DNA from: Rhodosorus marinus CCMP1338
Lineage: Eukaryota; Plantae; Rhodophyta
Direction: 5' to 3'
Length of the DNA: 64,000 nucleotides
NCBI GenBank assembly: GCA_029953675.1
Contig: JAMWBK010000006.1
Coordinates: forward strand, 1,612,001-1,676,000
The notes below the pieces were generated by a model. The model ran no database searches and was not told where the DNA came from. It saw only the letters and a list, made by a program, of their open reading frames with translations. Positions within the stretch are counted from its first letter, which is position 1. Each line of letters opens with the position of its first letter. A program made the position numbers and the translations under genes. Shown piece after piece: positions 12,238-28,467 of this stretch.

Positions 12238-14707
12238 CTACGCGGTGGCAAAGCCAAAAAGCTCTGAATTTTGAGCCTTTTCTCTACGATCCTCTACTCG
12301 CTCCCTGTAAGACATGATCGATATAATAATCCCAAGGATTACGAGAAGAACTGAGAGAACGATAGTTATGCCCAGCATCTGGCCTCCTCTTCTTTGTAGA
12401 AAGTATTCCATCCACCAGCTTCCCGTTCCATCTCCGGAATCAAGCCTAATTGAAACGAGGACAGGTAGGAGTACAGGCGTTCAGCTAGAGCACCACCTTC
12501 TCGATCTGAAAGTCGGGAATGTGTTTGGAACTAACCAGAGAAGAGCCATCGAGTTCGGCATCAAACCTGACCAAGTTCGAGTAAGACCTGCTGCGCCGAC
12601 AGACATTTGGCTCACATAGTTGACCACCCTCCTCAACCCGAAGAAGCAATTACACCTTTGCAACGGAAGGTAGGACTTTGTACGAGAAGAACGTGCAAAT
12701 CGGAAACGATTCAGGTGATACTTGCACACGAGGAGGTGGATGCTTGCATATACATATACATATTTGCTTACTGATTGTGGGCATTGCGAACACGACCGAA
12801 ACTCATGCCCATGCTCATCATCATAGACAATCGAAACTGTGTTGCCCGGAACTGGTGCAAAGGGCTTCGGTTTCGTGAAATATGAAAGATTGCTGAGACC
12901 CTGGCGTCAAGGGAAATACGCATAGTTAGCGTGCTCAGTTAGGCACACAGCAAATTCTAACCGGCCAAAGTGCCTGCTGTCCATTTGTCTCATCTCACCG
13001 TTGTCTTGAAGAACATTGCATCGGAACCACCTTTGATTCCGTTCCAAACAAGTTGTGTCCTACCTTCCCCTTCTATGACGATAAGATCCTGCCTCCCGCT
13101 GTCATCCGTATCGAACGACGCTGCCGCCACTATGTCTCCTAGCTCCTGGTTCAAATCGATGAGGTCGTAGGGCTCAAAACGCACGGTTGAGTTTTTATCG
13201 TGCTCCTTGATCGTATTTCTCCACAGCCTTAGCTCTCTGGTGGAGCCATCAACCGCGATTAGGTCCGTTGCTCCGTCCATGTTAAAATCTCCCGAACGCA
13301 GTGAAGCCGGAATTCTCTGTGGTGACGGAAGATAGCAACGACGGCCGCGATAAGTTTGACCAACTCTTCAGCACAGTGAACTAGTCAGGATCTCGTAGCT
13401 TACAAAATAGAATGAAACCTGTGTGTCGGCAATCGCAACGTCTTCCAGCACAACGCTGCTCACCAGCGTCCTGCAGCAAACGAACAGGAAAGGTACTTGT
13501 TAGAAAGTAAGAAATTGCTCCGCTTCTATGAGAAAATATCAGAGTCACTTGGACTACCTACCATTCCGGGTCCAGGTCGCAAATGGCTCCGTATTTTCTC
13601 GGTTTTTGTACGTTGCTGAGCATGATGATCTGCTTCAATTCATGGTTCGGAAAAACCAGGTCAGCACTACCATCGCCGTTGAAATCGGCGAACAGAATCC
13701 TTCCGTGTGTTCGTTGGTCATATAGGCTGGCATCAAACACCTTGTAGATTTCAGAATCGCTCTCAGACATAGACCACATCTTCACTTCCCTAGGAGCCAC
13801 TCTCGCTGGACTTGACCAAACCTGGCATTCGTACAAGGAGAGAAGAGGTTTATATGTTTCAGGTTCTGATATGTTCAGCCAGAGCTGTGGTTGAGCAGGA
13901 TAGATATGGGAGCAGCTATGCTCGCACCTCCAGTCCGCATGTTGACACTAAGACTAAATCTGCGTGACAGTCTCCATCGAGATCCACATGAGCGTTAGAA
14001 CTTGGCTCTAGGATATTACAGTCCGGGTGATATCCCTCCCTAGAACATGAGATTTTTGTAGCGACGGCTTGAGGCCTTCGGATTCGGACGGGTTTGGCAA
14101 ATGGCGGACAAACTAACCACTTGTGATATGCGAATTCTCCAGGAGGTGAGTTGCTGTGGAACCCGCGTTCTCCAGATGACTCGACCGTAACGAAAATGTC
14201 CGGGACGAGGTCCTTATCCGCGTCAAGAACGAGAAAGCCGGGACTGAAGGGTTCCAATGTAGGTCCAGCCGTGAAGACCCCAGTGCTATTCATAGAGTTG
14301 TAGAATATATGTCCTTTGCCATCGTCCGTGGACACCACGATGTCCAAAATTCCGTCATTGTTGAAGTCTCCAGAGTCAAGCCCGTTCATGTTTCCAAAGT
14401 TAAGTTCGACACCGCTCCCCAAGGGCTCGAAGCGATAATCAGCATGATTCCATCGTCCGAGCGACAGCTTTCGCATTTCTTTATCAACGAAGAGGATGTC
14501 CACCATGTAATCAGCATCAAAGTCGGCGAAAAGAACAGCCTCCCCAAACTCGCGGAGGTTGACGTAGTCGGTCTGGAGAGACCAGGGAGCGCCTCCCACA
14601 GAGGGACCTCCCTTACCGTTCCCTCCACCGAAAATGGAAGCGATACATCCATTGGGCACCCTGCTTAAGATCAGAACTATAAACAGAATACCCCATCTTC
14701 TATCCAT
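12238..14707 (-). CDS. ITFG1: ITFG1/LINKIN (TIP) FG-GAP-repeat type I membrane protein
   Basis: Signal peptide, then repeated FG-GAP-like motifs (LFADFDADYMVDI, GDFNNDGILDI, VDLDGDCHADL, FADFNGDGSADL, FDTDDSGRQDL). C-terminal FFGL..VNYV..MSVG...TWSGLMPNS, a TM helix (GITIVLSVLLVILGIIISIM) and the tail ERVEDRREK...FGF. Confidence 0.85.
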
Positions 14708-15926: not shown

Positions 15927-17510
15927 ATGGAGTCGCTTGTGAACAAATACGTGAAGAGAACAAGCCCCACTTCGCTTGTTATCGGGAAGGGGTTTGTCCC
16001 AAACATGAACGTGCCCGGGAAGGTCTTTGCAAACTCAACTCTGGAGAAGCTGCTTCTTGACGAAGCATCTGAGATAGCCAGCGGAAGTACGGGCAGTTTT
16101 ATACCGTCCCTGGCGCAGGTAGCTAATGTAGCAGCTCTCCCTGGCATTGTGGGTGAGTCGATCGCGATGCCTGACGTCCATTCTGGCTACGGCTTTGCTA
16201 TTGGCAACGTTGCCGCTTTCGACATGGATAACCCCTCCTCAATCGTTTCACCTGGCGGGGTCGGATTTGATATAAACTGCGGCGTACGCATGTTGAGGAC
16301 GAACCTGAAAGAGGAAGACGTGCGGCCCGTTCAGGAGCAACTTGCGCAGAATCTGTTTGATCACGTTCCGGTTGGTGTTGGCTCGAAATCACTCATTGGA
16401 GCCAGGACGTACTCCGATATCGATCAAATCCTAAACTATGGCATTGATTGGGCTCTGAGAGAAGGGTAAGCTACTCTCTACCCGCTTAAGCGTGCCCTCC
16501 CATCTGAGCTGACTATCCCGACCAATTTTTTCCGCAAACAAAGATACGCGTGGCCGGAAGATAAAGAGCTGTGCGAAGAACAAGGACGCATCGTCAAAGC
16601 AGACGCGAACCATGTTTCGCAAAAAGCTAAAGGTCGTGGTATGTCTCAACTGGGAACCCTCGGAGCTGGAAACCACTATGCCGAAGTTCAAGTCGTGGAT
16701 GAGGTATTCGATGCCACGTCCGCAGCGGTTCTCGGGTTGGAAAAGGGAACTGTCTGCATGATGATCCATTCAGGTTCAAGAGGGTTGGGGCATCAGATTG
16801 CATCGGAGACAGTGACCAAGATGGAATCCCTTCAGGAGCAAATGGGTATACAAGTTAACGATAGACAGCTGGTGTGCGCAAGAATCCAGTCCAAGGAAGG
16901 GGAAGAGTACCTGTCGGCCATGAACGCAGCTGCCAACTTTGCGTATGCGAATCGATCCATCATGACCTTCCTAGCGCGGCAAGCGTTTGCGAAAACATTC
17001 AACGCTACCCCAGATGATCTGGATATGAATCTAGTGTACGACGTGTCGCACAATATAGCGAAGGAGGAGATGCATCTCTTGAATGGAGAGGTTCGAAGAC
17101 TGCTGGTGCATAGAAAAGGTGCCACTAGGGCCTTTGGACCGTTCCATCCTTTGATTCCCACTGCATATCAGACTATTGGCCAGCCTGCGTTGGTGGGTGG
17201 AACTATGGGGACAGCATCGTATGTTCTCTTGGGAACCGATGAGGGCATGAAGACAGCTTTTGGCTCAACCTGCCACGGTGCCGGCCGTGCACTCAGCAGG
17301 AGCAAGAGTCGTGCCATGATAGATAGCATGGACGTGGCCGAGCGTCTTCGAGAAGCAAACGTATCCGCGAGAGTTGCTTCTTCTCACCTTCTCGCCGAGG
17401 AAGCTCCACAGTCCTACAAGGACGTGTTCGAGGTGGTGCAGACATGCGAGGAGGCTAAGCTATCCCGGGCTGCTGTGAGGATGAAGCCGGTGGCTGTGGC
17501 GAAGGGCTAG
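15927..17510 (+). CDS. RTCB: RtcB 3'-phosphate/5'-OH RNA ligase (eukaryotic HSPC117 type), one intron 16466-16543
   Basis: [71 protein letters not shown] and [10 protein letters not shown] are all intact. N-terminal KGFVPNM is typical of the eukaryotic form. Confidence 0.97.
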
Positions 17511-20460
17511 ATCAGAGGCCAGCAAAACGCAATTTCGCAAGTTTTTTAGGTTGCGGTAGATCGCGAAACCACTGCCTCCCCGTAGCCTCGGAGAGCAAGA
17601 GCTTAAGCGCATTATAGCTTAGCATGTCAGTTGGGTACGCTTTGGACACTGACTTCAGGTGCTTCCAAGGTTAGGCACTGTCCACGGGCCATGACAACAT
17701 TCGGGCTGATACAATTGTTGTGGTGGAGGAAGCACTTTCGATTTTGTCGGTCATCCGCAAGGTTGGGGATGGTACGGAAAGAATCGAGACGGATTACAGG
17801 AATTTTCTACTTGTCTTCAATTGCGAATCAAGATGTATTCTGATCTGGACAGGACAACCGAGGAGACCCATGAAAACGTACCAGCGAAACTGTCATCAAG
17901 GCAGCCTGGGCTCGTCCCCAAGTAACAGAGGGCTGGAACGGAGGGGCAATCGGTAGAGCAAACGGACGAGTGTTAGTGGAGAGATGCACCCACCTTCCAA
18001 ACGGTATACTATAGGAATATACCAACGCTCAAATTAAGAGACTATGTCGCAACCAAGCTAATACTCCTCGGTAAATACTCTTTTCACCAACCTCTTCCAA
18101 AATCTAGGGAAGACCTTACAAAACAAGTGCCTTATGCCATGGACGTGTCCATCCTTCAGATACCGTTCAGAACTTCAAAGGCGGTAACGGAATCAAAGAA
18201 TCAGAGTCGGTATCGAAATGGGCGGTCAACGCGTGTGTGCTCGGGGGGAATGTTGCATAGACAACAGAAGATCTGTCAAGAAAGTCGCTGACAATCCATA
18301 TCGTGCCCCCTTCTTGTGACGTGTGTGCTTAGTGAAGGCATCTTAACTCCGTAGCGGACTTATTCACCATAAATCACAGTCACATGGAGCAACAGCTCAG
18401 GTCCAAGTCTGCCCCAAGTGGTCTTCCACCTTAAAATAGAGTGAGGGATGCTTCGGTTTACGTTTGAATTCAAATGGATCCAAGACGGCCACATAGGCGG
18501 CCAGAGTTACGCAGTGCTTCCATAAATTGTGCTAATAATACGTCAACCGTCAGCCTTTTGGCGTGCCGGACTTGTTGGGACGGATATAAATCTCAACACT
18601 TTCCGCAAGCCACGCGGCCACTTTCGGCAGCCCCAACACCGCTTCCAAAACCCTATCAACGGGATCCGATCCTTCCCTAAACAACCTACATTCCATCACA
18701 GCCTGTCCATCAGAAGGAGTGAAATTCGAAAACAAAATGGAGTACCCTATTTTTAAATACTAAACAAAAACAATTTATATTTTACAAGCAATAAGGGGGG
18801 GCAGGGAGAAGATTTTCTAAAATTGAATCAACGCAGATGGGCATATTTCAAAAAATAAATCAGAGTTATTTGAATTTCACGAATACGTTTGCAACGTCTA
18901 ACCCTGGGACAAAATACACGGAATAGTTTTTGTTTGTTCTTTTTCTTTTTTTTCAAAGGTGCCCTTAATTTGGTAGGTCTGAGCCTGCCAACCGAGGAAT
19001 CTGGGCTTTCTTCCTTTTTTTGCTGATCAACTTTAGGATTCATATTTGTTTTGTGAGTGAGCAATATTTATACGTTTACATGTATGAAAATATTATTGGA
19101 AAACTCGTTGGTTGCAGAAGTGCGTGGACAAATTGTCTTAAAACTAGAAAATCTCTATCCGTAAAAAAACTTTGTTTTTGGCGGAGCAGATAAAAAACCT
19201 TAACGAGATATCGTTTCGCGGCTTGTTTAAAGTCGAACCACATATCATATACCCTTTCACACAAAATGTTTTATACTCAAAACACATTTTTCTTTAAATC
19301 ACATTCACCTGGATCCGACCAAAGTCACATTTTCTACACCCTTGTGGACTTTCAGTTTCTAAAAAGATGGAAACTCAGAAACGTCGATTTGATTTTGTTT
19401 TTTCTTGGCCAATCATTTGCTCTCGAACAAAACGCGGGGTTGTAGAATGAGGACGAGAAGCAAGTATCCAACCTCCGTGAGAAAGATAGTCAGAATTTCA
19501 AACCGTTCAAAAACCCGTGGCAAAAGGTTTCTTTCCAGGCCCCCTCTGAGGGATGGTTTTACTTTTTTCACGTGAAACTACCCAAGGGGGTTCGATGGAA
19601 TGTACATACACTCTGCTTTATAACAATAATCCATTTTTCATCAATAATTTTATCGTCCTTTTAACTCCACAGAATTCTCTCAGGGGTATAAATGATATCG
19701 CGATAGAAAACGTAACGAGCCCGCGACATGTTCTGAACCCCATCCACCACGGTGCCCCGGTTGAATGGTTGAATGAGATTTGCAGCTCTTGAGCTACTTA
19801 ACCCCCTACTCAACCCCTGCCTACCCTGCATCACATGCAAACCAAAGGAATTTGCCCGCAAAAAGCTAAAAATTTATTCACAATGATCGTTTTTGTCTTG
19901 GGGTACATGAATTCAAAAATGGTCCCATAAAAAAATGAAAACGAAGTGTGCCATTGTGTCCCATCAAGACGTTGAACACCCACCGCGAGGAGGGCCTCGA
20001 GTTTAAGACTCTGTTACTTACTGGCCTACTACCACCTCAACCTCCAAATACTTTCTTCCCCCCCCTTCAAGATTGAGTATCAACCGACTCCTTCATAAAA
20101 ACCTGTCAAAAAGAAGTGGAAAACAGGGAACATCGAGGGGTGAGGGATCAAGAAAAACTGGAGGGATGTTTCTGAGATTGTTTTTTTTTGAATTGTGAAA
20201 AATGCTTTATGTCAGCTTTCGCGGCAAAACTTGTTAGTTTGTATTTTTCCTTTATTGTGCCGAAAAGGGGAGGGGGGGGGGATCGGGGTTGTCCTACCTC
20301 TCGAAAACGGGGGCATAATCGGTTGTTGTGCTAAAGGTTTTTCATATATGAAAGTTTCAGGTGCATCTTTCGAACTTGTTTGCCGAGGGGAGAATTGGAG
20401 AGGATTATGGCTTAGGGTATTCCGATTAGAGTAAAGAGAACGTGGTTAGTGTATGCGTGT

Positions 20461-20487
20461 GAGAGAGAAAGAGAGAGAGAGAGAGAG
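20461..20487. repeat. Interrupted (GA)n microsatellite in the 5' region of the Hint-protein gene
   Basis: gagagagaaagagagagagagagagag, flanked by GT-rich dinucleotide runs. Confidence 0.8.
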
Positions 20488-20538: not shown

Positions 20539-23043
20539 ATGGGTGAGAAGATGAGGGTTTTTTTCTTGCTGTTACCGTTGCTGTGTGTGGGGTTGTCGGT
20601 GGCCGTGAAGATTCCTAGTGAACTTCTCCCTGGTGAAGATTTCCAGAGTGTAGCCAGAACATGGGCGGATAGAATATCTGTATTGCACACTGTTGCTGCT
20701 CGTCAAGGCGGGACGTGCGTCGAGGAACAGGAGGAGCGGTTGAGTTTTGATACTCCAATCGATGATCTTCCGACGAGCTTTTCTGAAATCCCTCTAGATT
20801 TCACCGTCTTCAGACCAGAGGGCGGTGTGTGTGCGGACGGGTCTCCGTACAATTTCATCTTTGTCAAGCAGAGTTCAACGAGATTGAATATCCATATAAC
20901 ACCCGGCGGATTTTGCTACGACCCCACAACCTGCTGCGGTCCCAATGCGTCCCAATTTTACACTTCTTCACTTCCTGATGAAGAATTTTGGGCGGCTTTG
21001 ACGTGCAGTCCGCCTCTGGCCAGGCAGCTCAGGCTGCTCTCTCTTCAAGGAATTTTCAGTCTTGTTCCTAGTAACCCGATGGCCGACTACTCGCATTTAA
21101 TTGTTCCTTCGTGTTCCGGAGAAGGTGCACTTGCGGATACGCAAGTTGACTACAGCGGGGACGGTATCTCTTGCTCGGTCGAGCATAAAGGATCAGGGAA
21201 CACGCAGATAGCAATCGATTGGGTGCTCAATTTGATGGGATCGGATCTAACCCATGTCACGTTCAGCGGTGCTGGATCTGGCTCCGTTGGAATCAAGTTG
21301 CATGCTGCTAAGGCAATGGAAGACCTCAAGACTATTCAACCGAATAACTCGGTCATTTCTACAGTACTCGCTGATGCTGGTGTAGGAATGCTTGTGGTTC
21401 CGGAGACTTGGGACATCTTGAGCCAAGGCATATACCCCCAAGTTTTTCAGCAGTCATCGGTGTTTCCGGATTTCACAGGTTTTGTTGAGGCTGATGAAAG
21501 CTTGAGTGAGGTGCAGGAAAATACTGCGGAGATTACCGCGGGAATTCTGCGTGACTCGTACACGAACATTTACAACTACTTTGCCGACTCCTCTCAAGTT
21601 CTCGAGACAACGTTTCTACAAGACACTGTCCAGATTGCGGATGCGATTTCGAGTACTCAGGCAAGTACTGGTTCGACGAGCTGCTCTAGTGATCAGACCT
21701 GCGCGCAACTATTTCCCGAAGTTGCAGAAACGTCTATGCGGACGGGAGCGACGGATGTTCCAGGTCCTTTCACGGGCTTTACAGCTCCAGGAACGCAGAA
21801 CGTGATTATAACTACTCCCGAATTCGAGGACCAAGTTTACGCTGCGTACAGGGGTGGGGGCGAGACCACGACAAGGGCGTTTTCAATTCTGAGTCAAGCA
21901 GTGGACAGAACAATGCCAATGCCTGTACAGCCGTCTTTTCCTCCCACAGCGAGCCCCAGTGCTTCCCCGACCCCGGGAACCAGCACTCCCACGGCGAGCC
22001 CCAGTCCTACTACGACTCCTGGAACCAGTACTCCTACCGCGACCCCGACCCCGGGCACCCCTACTGCGACCCCGACCCCGGGTACTCCTACTGCGACCCC
22101 GACAGAGGCCACACCGACTGCGACGGTATTGCCGATCACGCCAACACCAAGTTCGACATCAATCACATCGACACCAACGGCGACAGAGGGTACACCGACC
22201 GCCACCGCCGAGCCAGTGACGGGGACGCCTACTGCGACAGAAACAGCTTTTCCAACGGGTACAGAAACAGGTTTTCCAACGGGTACTGCGACGGAGACAC
22301 CTGTTCCAACGGGCACTGCGACGGGAACAGTTCTTCCAACTTCTACGCCAACAGAGACCGGTATGGAAACGCCGACAATGACATTGAACCCGTCCGAATC
22401 TGAGAGCATCTCGGAATCTGTATCTGAGTCTATCAGCGAATCTGTGAGCGCAAGTGAATCTGCGAGCGAGTCAGCGACTGCATCGGCAACTCCAACGCCG
22501 TCACCTGATGCTGCATGTTTCCCCGGTGATGCTGTTGTCGAAACTAGGGAGGGTTTCATCCGAATGGAAGATTTGCGAATCGGTGACAGCGTACGCGTCG
22601 GAGCGGACCAATTCAGCGAGGTTTACATGTTTACTCACCAAAATGCGGACGTGGTGACATCTATGATTCGGGTTGAGGCTGGAGGCAGGGCTTTAGAGCT
22701 AAGCCCAACTCACTATATACCCGTGGAGGGGGTTTTAAAGACAGCCAAGACCGTACAGGTTGGAGACTTGCTGGACGAGGTGAATGGAACAGCAGTAGAA
22801 ATTAACTCCGTGCAGCTGGTTGAGAAGAGAGGACTTTACAACCCTCAAACTATGGATGGCAGAATTGCGGTGAATGGATTGATCCTTTCAACCTTCACGA
22901 AGACGGTCCATCCGATCGTTGCGAAGGTTCTCTTGCTCGTGCCTAAGATGCTCTACAATCTGGGACTTCCGAACCCATTCGCTCGTTTGTTCCTCATGGA
23001 TAATAGCTTCGCATCAAAATTGGTGCCGAGAGGCTTTGATTAG
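20539..23043 (+). CDS. Secreted pectin-acetylesterase/Notum-like domain + Thr/Pro/Ser mucin-like stalk + C-terminal Hedgehog-type Hint (Hog) domain; intronless, 834 aa
   Basis: Signal peptide (VFFLLLPLLCVGLSVA). PAE-like motifs CADGSPYNF, PGGFCYDPTTC, NPMADYSHLIVPSCSG, VEHKG and DAG. Hint domain starts ACFPGDAVV (Cys codon 22516-22518) with LRIGDSV, LSPTHY and GLYNPQTMDGRIAVNG. Confidence 0.9.
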   Translation: MGEKMRVFFLLLPLLCVGLSVAVKIPSELLPGEDFQSVARTWADRISVLHTVAARQGGTCVEEQEERLSFDTPIDDLPTSFSEIPLDFTVFRPEGGVCADGSPYNFIFVKQSSTRLNIHITPGGFCYDPTTCCGPNASQFYTSSLPDEEFWAALTCSPPLARQLRLLSLQGIFSLVPSNPMADYSHLIVPSCSGEGALADTQVDYSGDGISCSVEHKGSGNTQIAIDWVLNLMGSDLTHVTFSGAGSGSVGIKLHAAKAMEDLKTIQPNNSVISTVLADAGVGMLVVPETWDILSQGIYPQVFQQSSVFPDFTGFVEADESLSEVQENTAEITAGILRDSYTNIYNYFADSSQVLETTFLQDTVQIADAISSTQASTGSTSCSSDQTCAQLFPEVAETSMRTGATDVPGPFTGFTAPGTQNVIITTPEFEDQVYAAYRGGGETTTRAFSILSQAVDRTMPMPVQPSFPPTASPSASPTPGTSTPTASPSPTTTPGTSTPTATPTPGTPTATPTPGTPTATPTEATPTATVLPITPTPSSTSITSTPTATEGTPTATAEPVTGTPTATETAFPTGTETGFPTGTATETPVPTGTATGTVLPTSTPTETGMETPTMTLNPSESESISESVSESISESVSASESASESATASATPTPSPDAACFPGDAVVETREGFIRMEDLRIGDSVRVGADQFSEVYMFTHQNADVVTSMIRVEAGGRALELSPTHYIPVEGVLKTAKTVQVGDLLDEVNGTAVEINSVQLVEKRGLYNPQTMDGRIAVNGLILSTFTKTVHPIVAKVLLLVPKMLYNLGLPNPFARLFLMDNSFASKLVPRGFD
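21949..22500 (+). repeat. Coding low-complexity repeats forming a mucin-like linker
   Basis: 27-nt tandem units at 22036-22103 (TATPTPGTP), a 24-nt tandem pair at 22237-22284 (TETA/GFPTG) and an SESISESVSES run. Confidence 0.9.
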
Positions 23044-25910: not shown

Positions 25911-26543
25911 TTAGACCGAGGAAGAATACGCCATGTCCCAAAAGGCTGTCTCTAGAAGCGCGATCTTGAGGAAGTGATCTTCGACTTTCTTTTTTTCATC
26001 TTCGGTTAGTGTTCTCATGCTCTTGTCGGCGGCCTCCCGGAGCTGAATTGTGTACTCCGTGAAAGAGTCAGCACCCCATCTCGCGGCAAAAGTCTCAAAA
26101 GCTGGTGCAGAGGGTGTAGCCCCCTTCCATGCAACGTTGTAGACATATTCTATCGCCCAGAGGCACATGATTTGGACATTGTACGGCTCAGACCGTATAG
26201 ACCTCAAGAAAGATACGTATTCCGCACATGCTTCTTGCATTGGAACACCAAGCGATACGTTCCTCTCTGCAGCTTTTTCCTTGAACCACAAAACCTCATC
26301 CCAAAGTGCCCAGAGCCCACCATGAATTAATTCATAGTCCTCATCTGGGCATTCAGCAAGAACAGCCCCAACAGTCCTAGAAAATTCCCTCGCGAAATAG
26401 TAATCCTGACTCAACCAGGTGTAGAACTGACTCAACTCAAGCTTTCCAGTCTTCACACCATCCAAAAATCTGTGCTGAGTCGCCTTCTCCCAGGCACCAG
26501 CATGCTTTTCTAGCAACTCAGTACATGTAGCCATCGTTTTCAT
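25911..26543 (-). CDS. tenA: TenA/THI-4 family thiamine-salvage protein, TenA_E type; intronless
   Basis: ATQHRFL, WLSQDYYF, WAIEYVYNVAW (no catalytic Cys, as in plant TenA_E), ARWG and LETAFWDMAY. Confidence 0.9.
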   Translation of the reverse strand: MKTMATCTELLEKHAGAWEKATQHRFLDGVKTGKLELSQFYTWLSQDYYFAREFSRTVGAVLAECPDEDYELIHGGLWALWDEVLWFKEKAAERNVSLGVPMQEACAEYVSFLRSIRSEPYNVQIMCLWAIEYVYNVAWKGATPSAPAFETFAARWGADSFTEYTIQLREAADKSMRTLTEDEKKKVEDHFLKIALLETAFWDMAYSSSV

Positions 26544-27849: not shown

Positions 27850-28467
27850 CTACTTGAACTGGTTCGGAATTAGTTTCAAAAATGCGTCATAGTTGGAGTC
27901 GAGTTTCGCAAGCAGGTCGCTTATGTTTGAGTTCGATTGCTTGCGGCTCACAAGGAGAGCCTGATGGTCAAGGTCCTCCAGGGACTTGGTCATGACCTTG
28001 TACGCCTTAACTGCCGAGGAGCGCTTGTCACCAACCTCCGGGGTGTAGTTCGCGAGGTAGTACGATACTTTTCGTATCTCCATGAGAGGAAATGATCGGA
28101 ACTCGTACCTCAATTCTTCTAGTCTGTCCTGCTCGACGAGAGTATGCAGCTCCTTAATCCCTAACCACAACGGAGATAATTACGGCCGAATCGCTGCTTA
28201 GTTTTCAGTTCCAAGGCGCTCACGCAACGGGAAGAAACCCGCAGCGTTTCGGAACTTACTCTGTCGAATATCTAGAGCAATTCCATAGTACTCTAATCCC
28301 TTGGGCTGTTCCTCAACTGCAAACACAGGAGCATCACCAATGTTGGCCAGGACTGTCCCAGAAACCACTACGCCAATGGCCCGCATCGCTTCTCGACGAC
28401 TGCAAGCCGCGCATTTTGTAGTCGACCGATCAAAAGCGTAGACGGTTGAAGGTATAAAGCCAATCAT
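27850..28467 (-). CDS. Thylakoid-lumen PsbQ-like four-helix protein, 2 exons
   Basis: MIGF transit peptide, Tat-like SRREAMR...hydrophobic...VFA signal and a gtaagt donor. The mature part is helical with KAYKVMTKSLEDLDHQA and LDSNYDAFLKLIP, resembling PsbQ/CyanoQ-like bundles. Confidence 0.6.

Follow-up and report, generated by a model that had tools for sequence, protein, structure and literature searches.

The 64-kb window analysed here, the whole stretch of 64,000 nucleotides taken from contig JAMWBK010000006.1, belongs to Rhodosorus marinus, a unicellular red alga of the Stylonematophyceae (source paper of assembly GCA_029953675.1). Within it, a single ATG-to-TAG frame of ~2.5 kb runs without interruption and encodes a protein of 834 amino acids. 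The protein consists, in order, of a probable signal peptide, a head resembling Notum and the pectin acetylesterases (PAE), a stalk rich in Thr, Pro, and Ser, and a Hedgehog-type Hog domain, and the identity of these domains is close to certain. The same order had been proposed in a first-pass annotation of the DNA, and the motifs quoted there are all present in the 834-residue translation at the residues given for them. The gene and its domains are as follows.

20539..23043, plus strand: complete intronless coding sequence, 834 amino acids plus a TAG stop (open reading frame scan; identical to the public gene call on JAMWBK010000006.1).
20539..20604, plus strand: probable signal peptide, residues 1-22 (MGEKMR, a hydrophobic core, then SVA/VK; judged by eye from the sequence).
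20608..21918, plus strand: head, residues 24-460, with an alpha/beta-hydrolase fold of the Notum/PAE family behind an N-terminal helix (phmmer, profile, AlphaFold2, Foldseek).
21919..22515, plus strand: Thr/Pro/Ser/Ala-rich stalk, residues 461-659, with an acidic Ser/Glu-rich end (composition, tandem repeats).
22516..22893, plus strand: Hint module, residues 660-785 (PF01079; profile against 6td6_B).
22894..23040, plus strand: tail of 49 residues resembling an adduct- or sterol-recognition region (profile alignment, conservation, hydrophobic-moment scan).

By inspection, the probable signal peptide reads MGEKMR followed by VFFLLLPLLCVGLSVA. The motifs of the head start at residues 98 (CADGSPY), 122 (PGGFCYD), 190 (PSCSG), and 214 (VEHKG), and SGAGSGSVG occupies residues 243-251. 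In the Hog domain, Cys660 lies within CFPGD, and SEVYMFTH, SPTH, and STFT occupy residues 693-700, 722-725, and 784-787.

The stalk, over residues 481-659, is composed of 32% Thr, 17% Pro, 14% Ser, and 11% Ala, and tandem repeats of 21-45 nt encode part of it. With ~200 residues it is long compared with the linkers of ~20-60 residues in Hog-fused relatives, and it is probably O-glycosylated. An antisense open reading frame of 221 codons (21894-22559, minus strand) was rejected as a gene. Its product is a low-complexity, G/V/A-rich mirror of the Thr and Pro codon repeats of the stalk.

The head belongs to the Notum/PAE superfamily, in which it is divergent. This assignment rests on phmmer, profiles, and structure because the Pfam PAE score alone is sub-threshold. 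Of the two Pfam families to which the first-pass annotation pointed, Hint (PF01079) is matched well above its cut-off (residues 658-806, 56.4 bits against 29.7 bits, E 4.2e-15), whereas PAE (PF03283) stays below its 26.6-bit cut-off, with 12.5 bits for the full protein and 15.4 and 19.5 bits for sub-fragments. Hint aside, PF03283 is the sole family-level Pfam match of the protein at any threshold. An NCBIfam search of the protein gave no match, and phmmer with the head alone against the Protein Data Bank (PDB) returned only noise.

An exhaustive HMMER (phmmer) search with residues 1-490 against 1.84 billion representative sequences returned 451 matches at E<=1e-3. Relatives among them pass the Pfam PAE cut-off, both bacterial-type proteins (P0017 with 60 bits and P0018 with 68 bits; phmmer E 1e-15 to 1e-13) and Hog-fused ones (P0010 with 34 bits and P0016 with 29 bits). 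A profile of 73 family sequences, the query included, matches the human and Drosophila Notum structures across the entire domain at E 4e-23. In this match the GsSAG, DsG, and His motifs of the profile align with the corresponding motifs of Notum, and at the catalytic His site ‘eHtil’ of the profile is aligned to ‘SHEII’ of Notum. An AlphaFold2 (AF2) model of residues 24-470, built from a multiple-sequence alignment, has a predicted local distance difference test score (pLDDT) of 85.4 and a predicted template-modelling score (pTM) of 0.86; a run from the single sequence gave a pLDDT of 34 and was not used. The best 50 Foldseek matches of the model in the PDB are all Notum, with probability 1.00, E ~1e-11, and template-modelling (TM) scores of 0.45-0.62.

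The head subfamily is common to proteins of ~350 residues from bacterial metagenome bins, for example Anaerolineae, and has a conserved HxG motif. Plant PAE and Notum are more distant from it in sequence than the bacterial PAE-like proteins are. The HxG motif is VEHKG in the R. marinus protein, and in a 158-sequence head alignment, which was also used to score the triad columns, its His216 (window 21184-21186) is kept in 152 of the 158 relatives; the residue is Phe in Notum. The CTGD motif of the family reads CSGE here, with Glu195 where 156 of 158 sequences carry Asp. Another unusual PAE-like fusion is found in the bacterial P0060 cluster (1430 residues), named ‘predicted RND superfamily exporter’ by one source, in which the PAE-like domain lies in the C-terminal part, at residues 994-1236. 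A scan of metagenome loci found no close relatives of the head.

PAE-Hog proteins form a small fusion family, red-algal where the species is named. At least seven other representative proteins combine the head with a C-terminal Hint domain, namely P0009-P0014 and P0016 (full-length form P0161), and the eight best head matches are all Hog-fused except the choanoflagellate protein P0015. P0161 is from Compsopogon caeruleus (UniRef A0A7S1XGS8, automatically named ‘Hedgehog protein Hint domain-containing protein’) and P0014 from Rhodochaete pulchella; the remaining fused relatives are MMETSP marine-protist transcripts or read-archive assemblies. The first-pass annotation regarded the domain combination as undescribed, and a literature search for a PAE/Notum-Hint combination indeed found no description. 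The layout itself is not unique to R. marinus, since seven other proteins share it, one of them the automatically named UniRef entry; in the databases the architecture is represented by unnamed or automatically named entries only.

In a neighbour-joining tree of the heads with 71 bootstraps, the Hog-fused heads are monophyletic in 62. The choanoflagellate P0015 is their nearest outgroup, weakly (33/71), and the query groups with P0009 in 38/71; internal branches are weak. A recent bacterial transfer or a retroposition, at which the first-pass annotation hinted, was rejected. The absence of introns was the sole argument for it, and missing introns are no evidence for bacterial origin because P0009 and P0010 are also intronless (single-exon genes in genomic contigs, L002 1213-3186 and L003 1592-3484) and the Hog-fused heads cluster as a separate clade whose nearest neighbour is a choanoflagellate protein. 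The R. marinus genome itself is not intron-free, as some of the neighbouring gene calls contain introns.

P0015 (Microstomoeca roanoka, 511 residues) has an intact GDSAG/Asp/His triad, no Hog domain, and a hydrophobic extreme C-terminus that looks like a glycosylphosphatidylinositol-anchor signal or a transmembrane anchor. A role of the C-terminal module in surface tethering is circumstantially supported, because P0015 has this anchor-like tail in place of a Hog domain and the head family may thus be held at the surface by more than one route.

Notum has a Ser-Asp-His triad, in which the acid is numbered Asp340 (PMC5465549). The corresponding positions of the R. marinus head are the following.

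21265..21291, plus strand: degenerate nucleophile elbow SGAGSGSVG, residues 243-251 (alignment, AF2).
21274-21276, plus strand: Gly246 at the Ser position of GxSAG (column Ser in 149/158).
21373..21375, plus strand: Asp279, the retained triad acid, in LADAGVG, the equivalent of the DSG motif (column Asp in 142/158; aligns to ADSG of Notum).
21799..21801, plus strand: Asn421 at the catalytic His position (column His in 138/158, Asn only here).

The loss of the nucleophile Ser, already claimed in the first-pass annotation, is confirmed by the Gly at this column and by the secondary structure of the AF2 model, in which residue 246 forms the turn from strand 239-245 to helix 247-266, where the classical nucleophile elbow lies. 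The replacement of the catalytic His goes beyond the earlier claim, and the reading of the head as a pseudo-esterase is much firmer because of it. The remaining structural Cys, Gly, and Asp motifs of the hydrolase fold are all kept. Judged from these positions, the head is in all likelihood catalytically dead.

For the head to be an active esterase still, Ser247 or Ser249 would have to serve as nucleophile in a slipped register of the elbow, with another His, such as the widely kept His216, as the base. The local sequence gives this some footing, as A-G-S247-G-S and S-G-S249-V-G both match a small-x-Ser-x-small pattern. However, Gly246 falls on the nucleophile column with no indels in the alignments, it lies at the strand-helix turn of the AF2 model, and the canonical His is replaced as well. 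Moreover, P0009, among the closest relatives, reads GEGAGGYG at the elbow, so that the G-x-Nu-x-G core holds no Ser, and has Ser at the His site. An active head is thus very improbable.

Loss of the triad looks common to the R. marinus protein and P0009, and tolerated. Six of the seven Hog-fused relatives keep an intact triad, including P0010, which comes from the same organism as P0009 (sample SRR22824290) and retains GLSAG, Asp, and His; this suggests that live and dead PAE-Hog paralogues coexist as pairs. Because six of seven fused relatives keep the triad, a working esterase carried by a Hog domain is taken as the ancestral state. The Rhodosorus gene is, by this comparison of sequences, a derived, inactivated version with an expanded stalk.

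The C-terminal domain is a true Hedgehog-type Hint/Hog domain. In addition to the Pfam Hint match, a Hog profile built from the query and six relatives matches full-length Drosophila Hedgehog (6td6_B) at E 2e-17. The catalytic positions, placed by alignment with Hedgehog, are listed below.

22513..22518, plus strand: predicted autocleavage junction Ala659/Cys660 (Cys660 aligns with Hedgehog C258, C1).
22636-22638, plus strand: His700 at the D46 site.
22702-22713, plus strand: Ser722 to His725 at the TxxH site.
22891-22893, plus strand: Thr785 at the C143 site.

The cysteine equivalent to Hedgehog C258 is conserved in all family members. At the positions of T326 and H329, the His is kept as His725 and the Thr is replaced conservatively by Ser722, a change common in this subfamily. 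The general base D303 (D46) is replaced by His700, and C400 (C143), the second catalytic Cys, is absent, with Thr785 in its place; both replacements had been recognised in the first-pass annotation. Throughout the subfamily, the D46 site retains a His that could act as a general base. The C143 site varies among Cys, Ser, and Thr in the PAE-Hog family, while all else is conserved.

The first-pass annotation took His in place of Asp to point away from cholesterol, an argument that proves weak. An engineered D303H/D46H Hedgehog domain keeps its structure and its cholesterolysis and has a broadened sterol tolerance (review PMC9163320), and D46H Sonic Hedgehog is processed in cells (PMC12054796). 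Since D46H retains cholesterolysis, the Asp-to-His change may leave the role of the residue intact and is no argument against sterol transfer. The best single-sequence PDB match of the domain is 6tyy, itself a D46H mutant (LFMH at the D46 site, MFTH in the query), and the wild-type structure 1at0 scores lower. Thr785, on the other hand, is a real mechanistic question because C143A and C143D abolish autoprocessing of Sonic Hedgehog (2025 study, PMC12054796). In red-algal and moss Hog domains, the C143 (motif-J) cysteine is replaced by Ser, Thr, or Asp (Burglin 2008, PMC2362128).

An orthologous transcript, L004 (JGI sample 3300016967), is 1.2 kb long and polyadenylated, and a single frame runs through the end of a similar stalk and an entire Hog domain. 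Its amino acid identity to the query is 86%, and for the Hog domain the synonymous divergence (dS) is 0.43, the nonsynonymous divergence (dN) is 0.076, and dN/dS is 0.18. Its Hog domain keeps Cys at C1, His at D46, Thr at C143, and SPTH. The orthologue is expressed in a close relative, and the Hog domain is under purifying selection.

These data bear on whether the Hog domain is active at all. If it were inert, the protein would stay full length, and the Hint fold with its hydrophobic tail would act as a module for membrane association or interaction. The Thr at a site where Ala and Asp block Sonic Hedgehog processing would fit such a module, as would the replacement of Thr326 of TxxH by Ser722. 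Yet Cys660, His725, and His700 are conserved family-wide and in L004 under the selection just described, the Hog domains of red algae and mosses as a rule carry Ser, Thr, or Asp at the C143 site, and the family alternates between Cys and Ser/Thr at this one site with everything else conserved. An inert Hog domain is unlikely, and self-cleavage between residues 659 and 660 is probable.

Downstream of the Hint module, the Hog profile alignment continues into helix 1 of the Hedgehog sterol-recognition region (SRR), with LAHWGLAPMRLL set against the tail segment VAKVLLLVPKML. A second tail motif, NPFARLFLMDN..A..LP.G, is conserved. The wider C-terminal motif GLPNPF..LFL.DN....A..LP.G (residues 800-834, 22936-23040) is common to the query, L004, P0009, and P0010 but not conserved in the other PAE-Hog proteins; it is a subfamily-specific part of the adduct-recognition tail.

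Taken together, the protein may be a secretory precursor that is cleaved by its Hog domain and releases a lipid-esterified, stalked, dead head to the cell surface, a reading we favour with modest confidence. The precursor would enter the endoplasmic reticulum, where the head would fold and the stalk become O-glycosylated. Cys660 would then attack the carbonyl of Ala659, and the resulting N-to-S acyl shift would form a thioester. The thioester would be resolved by a hydroxyl nucleophile that the 49-residue tail binds and His700 activates, and the head and stalk would be released with a lipid ester at their C-terminus. The product would reside in the outer membrane leaflet, with the non-catalytic binding module extended into the wall or mucilage on the glycosylated stalk. 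This module might bind acyl groups or acetylated glycans, or serve as a decoy for active paralogues.

The nucleophile would most plausibly be a sterol. One source (PMC10692144) names cholesterol as the main sterol in living red algae, and a sterol is the simplest candidate for the adduct because of this sterol composition and because the D46H swap is competent for cholesterolysis. A sterol adduct is nonetheless a tentative proposal, held with less confidence than the cleavage itself.

The Hog domain could also cleave and have its thioester resolved by water or a small thiol, which would make the stalked head a soluble glycoprotein of the wall or mucilage without lipid. The shortness of the tail (49 residues) and the absence of C143 are compatible with such hydrolytic release, and the identity of the adduct was left open by Burglin (2008) for Hog proteins other than Hedgehog, hence the term ‘adduct recognition region’ (PMC2362128). 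This release would not, however, require the conserved His at the D46 site, nor does it sit well with a tail that is conserved in the query, P0009, P0010, and L004 and whose first helix aligns with the Hedgehog SRR. In addition, the choanoflagellate homologue P0015 appears to be membrane-tethered. Release without lipid is rather unlikely, though less so than an inert Hog domain.

Several points weigh against a cleaved and lipid-esterified pseudo-esterase. The cleavage, the adduct, and the loss of esterase activity are all inferred. Within the head, the Pfam PAE score of the R. marinus protein itself is under the curated cut-off, and Ser247 and Ser249 of the elbow sit in small-x-Ser-x-small contexts that make a slipped register conceivable. 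Within the Hog domain, Thr785 stands in place of C143, whose change to Ala or Asp abolishes Sonic Hedgehog autoprocessing, the TxxH motif is SxxH, and the residue at -1 is Ala and not Gly. Lastly, the recognition tail has 49 residues, compared with ~70 in Drosophila Hedgehog.

That the locus is a decaying gene or an annotation artefact without function is the least probable account. Two catalytic residues are lost, and the middle of the gene is repeat-rich and of low complexity, which would fit decay. Against this, the 2.5-kb open reading frame is uninterrupted, the structural motifs of the fold are kept with a confident AF2 model, and the polyadenylated orthologous transcript stays in frame from the stalk to the end of the Hog domain, at a dN/dS of 0.18.

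The public gene calls around the gene are the following, and a functional link to the Hog gene is not obvious for any of the five.

12238-14707, minus strand: ITFG1/FG-GAP-like protein.
15927-17510, plus strand: RtcB RNA ligase.
25911-26543, minus strand: TENA/THI-4 family protein.
27850-28467, minus strand: DUF7880 protein.
From 33027, plus strand: Dicer-like protein.

A second copy of the head or of the Hog domain was not found elsewhere within the 64-kb window, and Rfam and tRNA searches gave zero matches. Some ~50-270 nt 5' of the start codon lie a G10 run (window 20272-20281) and a (GA)8 microsatellite (20471-20486), which fall in the presumed promoter or 5' untranslated region of the 834-residue gene.

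Hog proteins of protists and red algae, with a secreted N-terminal domain followed by Hog, have been known since 2008 (Burglin 2008, PMC2362128), in agreement with the first-pass statement that their N-termini vary. Among them, the choanoflagellate Hoglet shares the order of head, stalk, and Hog, with a cellulose-binding-type head, a Thr-rich stretch of ~200 residues, and a Hog domain (PMC2362128). The N-terminal regions of the red-algal Hog proteins described in 2008 had no recognisable similarity, whereas the R. marinus head is an identifiable Notum/PAE fold that recurs in other proteins and is apparently dead here. The warthog, groundhog, and quahog proteins of nematodes likewise join a Hog domain to lineage-specific secreted N-domains (PMC2362128), but these are small and Cys-rich, lack an enzyme fold, and belong to another lineage.

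The animal Hedgehog precursor (HhN-HhC; 1at0, 6tyy, 6td6) shares with the R. marinus protein C1, the His of TxxH, the Hint fold, and helix 1 of the SRR, and also the predicted chemistry of an N-S acyl shift followed by transesterification. The R. marinus protein differs in its cargo, which is unrelated to the HhN signalling domain, in its His general base, a natural equivalent of D46H, and in the change of C143 to Thr, the Ala at -1, and the shorter tail. A Hedgehog pathway context is not expected in a red alga.

Notum, the carboxylesterase of palmitoleoylated Wnt proteins, and the pectin acetylesterases (PF03283, CE13) share the alpha/beta-hydrolase fold and the GxSAG, DSG, and H motifs as a family. 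Compared with these enzymes, the R. marinus head shows Gly in place of the Ser and Asn in place of the His, has an HxG motif that Notum lacks and an extra N-terminal helix, and continues into a stalk and a Hog domain. Neuroligins and other cholinesterase-like adhesion molecules combine a dead alpha/beta-hydrolase head with an O-glycosylated, Ser/Thr-rich stalk and have a binding role at the cell surface. They offer a functional analogy without implying homology, as they belong to another hydrolase family, have a transmembrane anchor, and occur only in animals.

The R. marinus protein belongs to the protist Hog class, within which it is set apart by a cargo with a recognisable enzyme fold, the hallmark of a fusion family. 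No new principle is involved, but the system is concrete and testable. In a more speculative extension, red algae may esterify cholesterol, by means of Hog domains, onto the C-terminus of Notum/PAE-like surface enzymes, with one Rhodosorus member turned into a dead, stalked binding module. If true, the protein would be the first one outside animals to carry a sterol, and its Hog domain would be a naturally occurring one that functions with His as general base and lacks C143, a residue which a recent report calls indispensable in Hedgehog. Since red algae make cholesterol, the question of whether protein cholesterylation is older than animals can realistically be addressed in them. The occurrence of Notum/PAE-type cargo in live and dead versions makes enzyme activity, binding, and localisation accessible to assay. 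The family bears on which molecule protist Hog domains add to their cargo and on whether Hog processing can run without C143, and the combination of a His base with Thr at the C143 site is a natural experiment on which steps of Hedgehog autoprocessing are ancestral.

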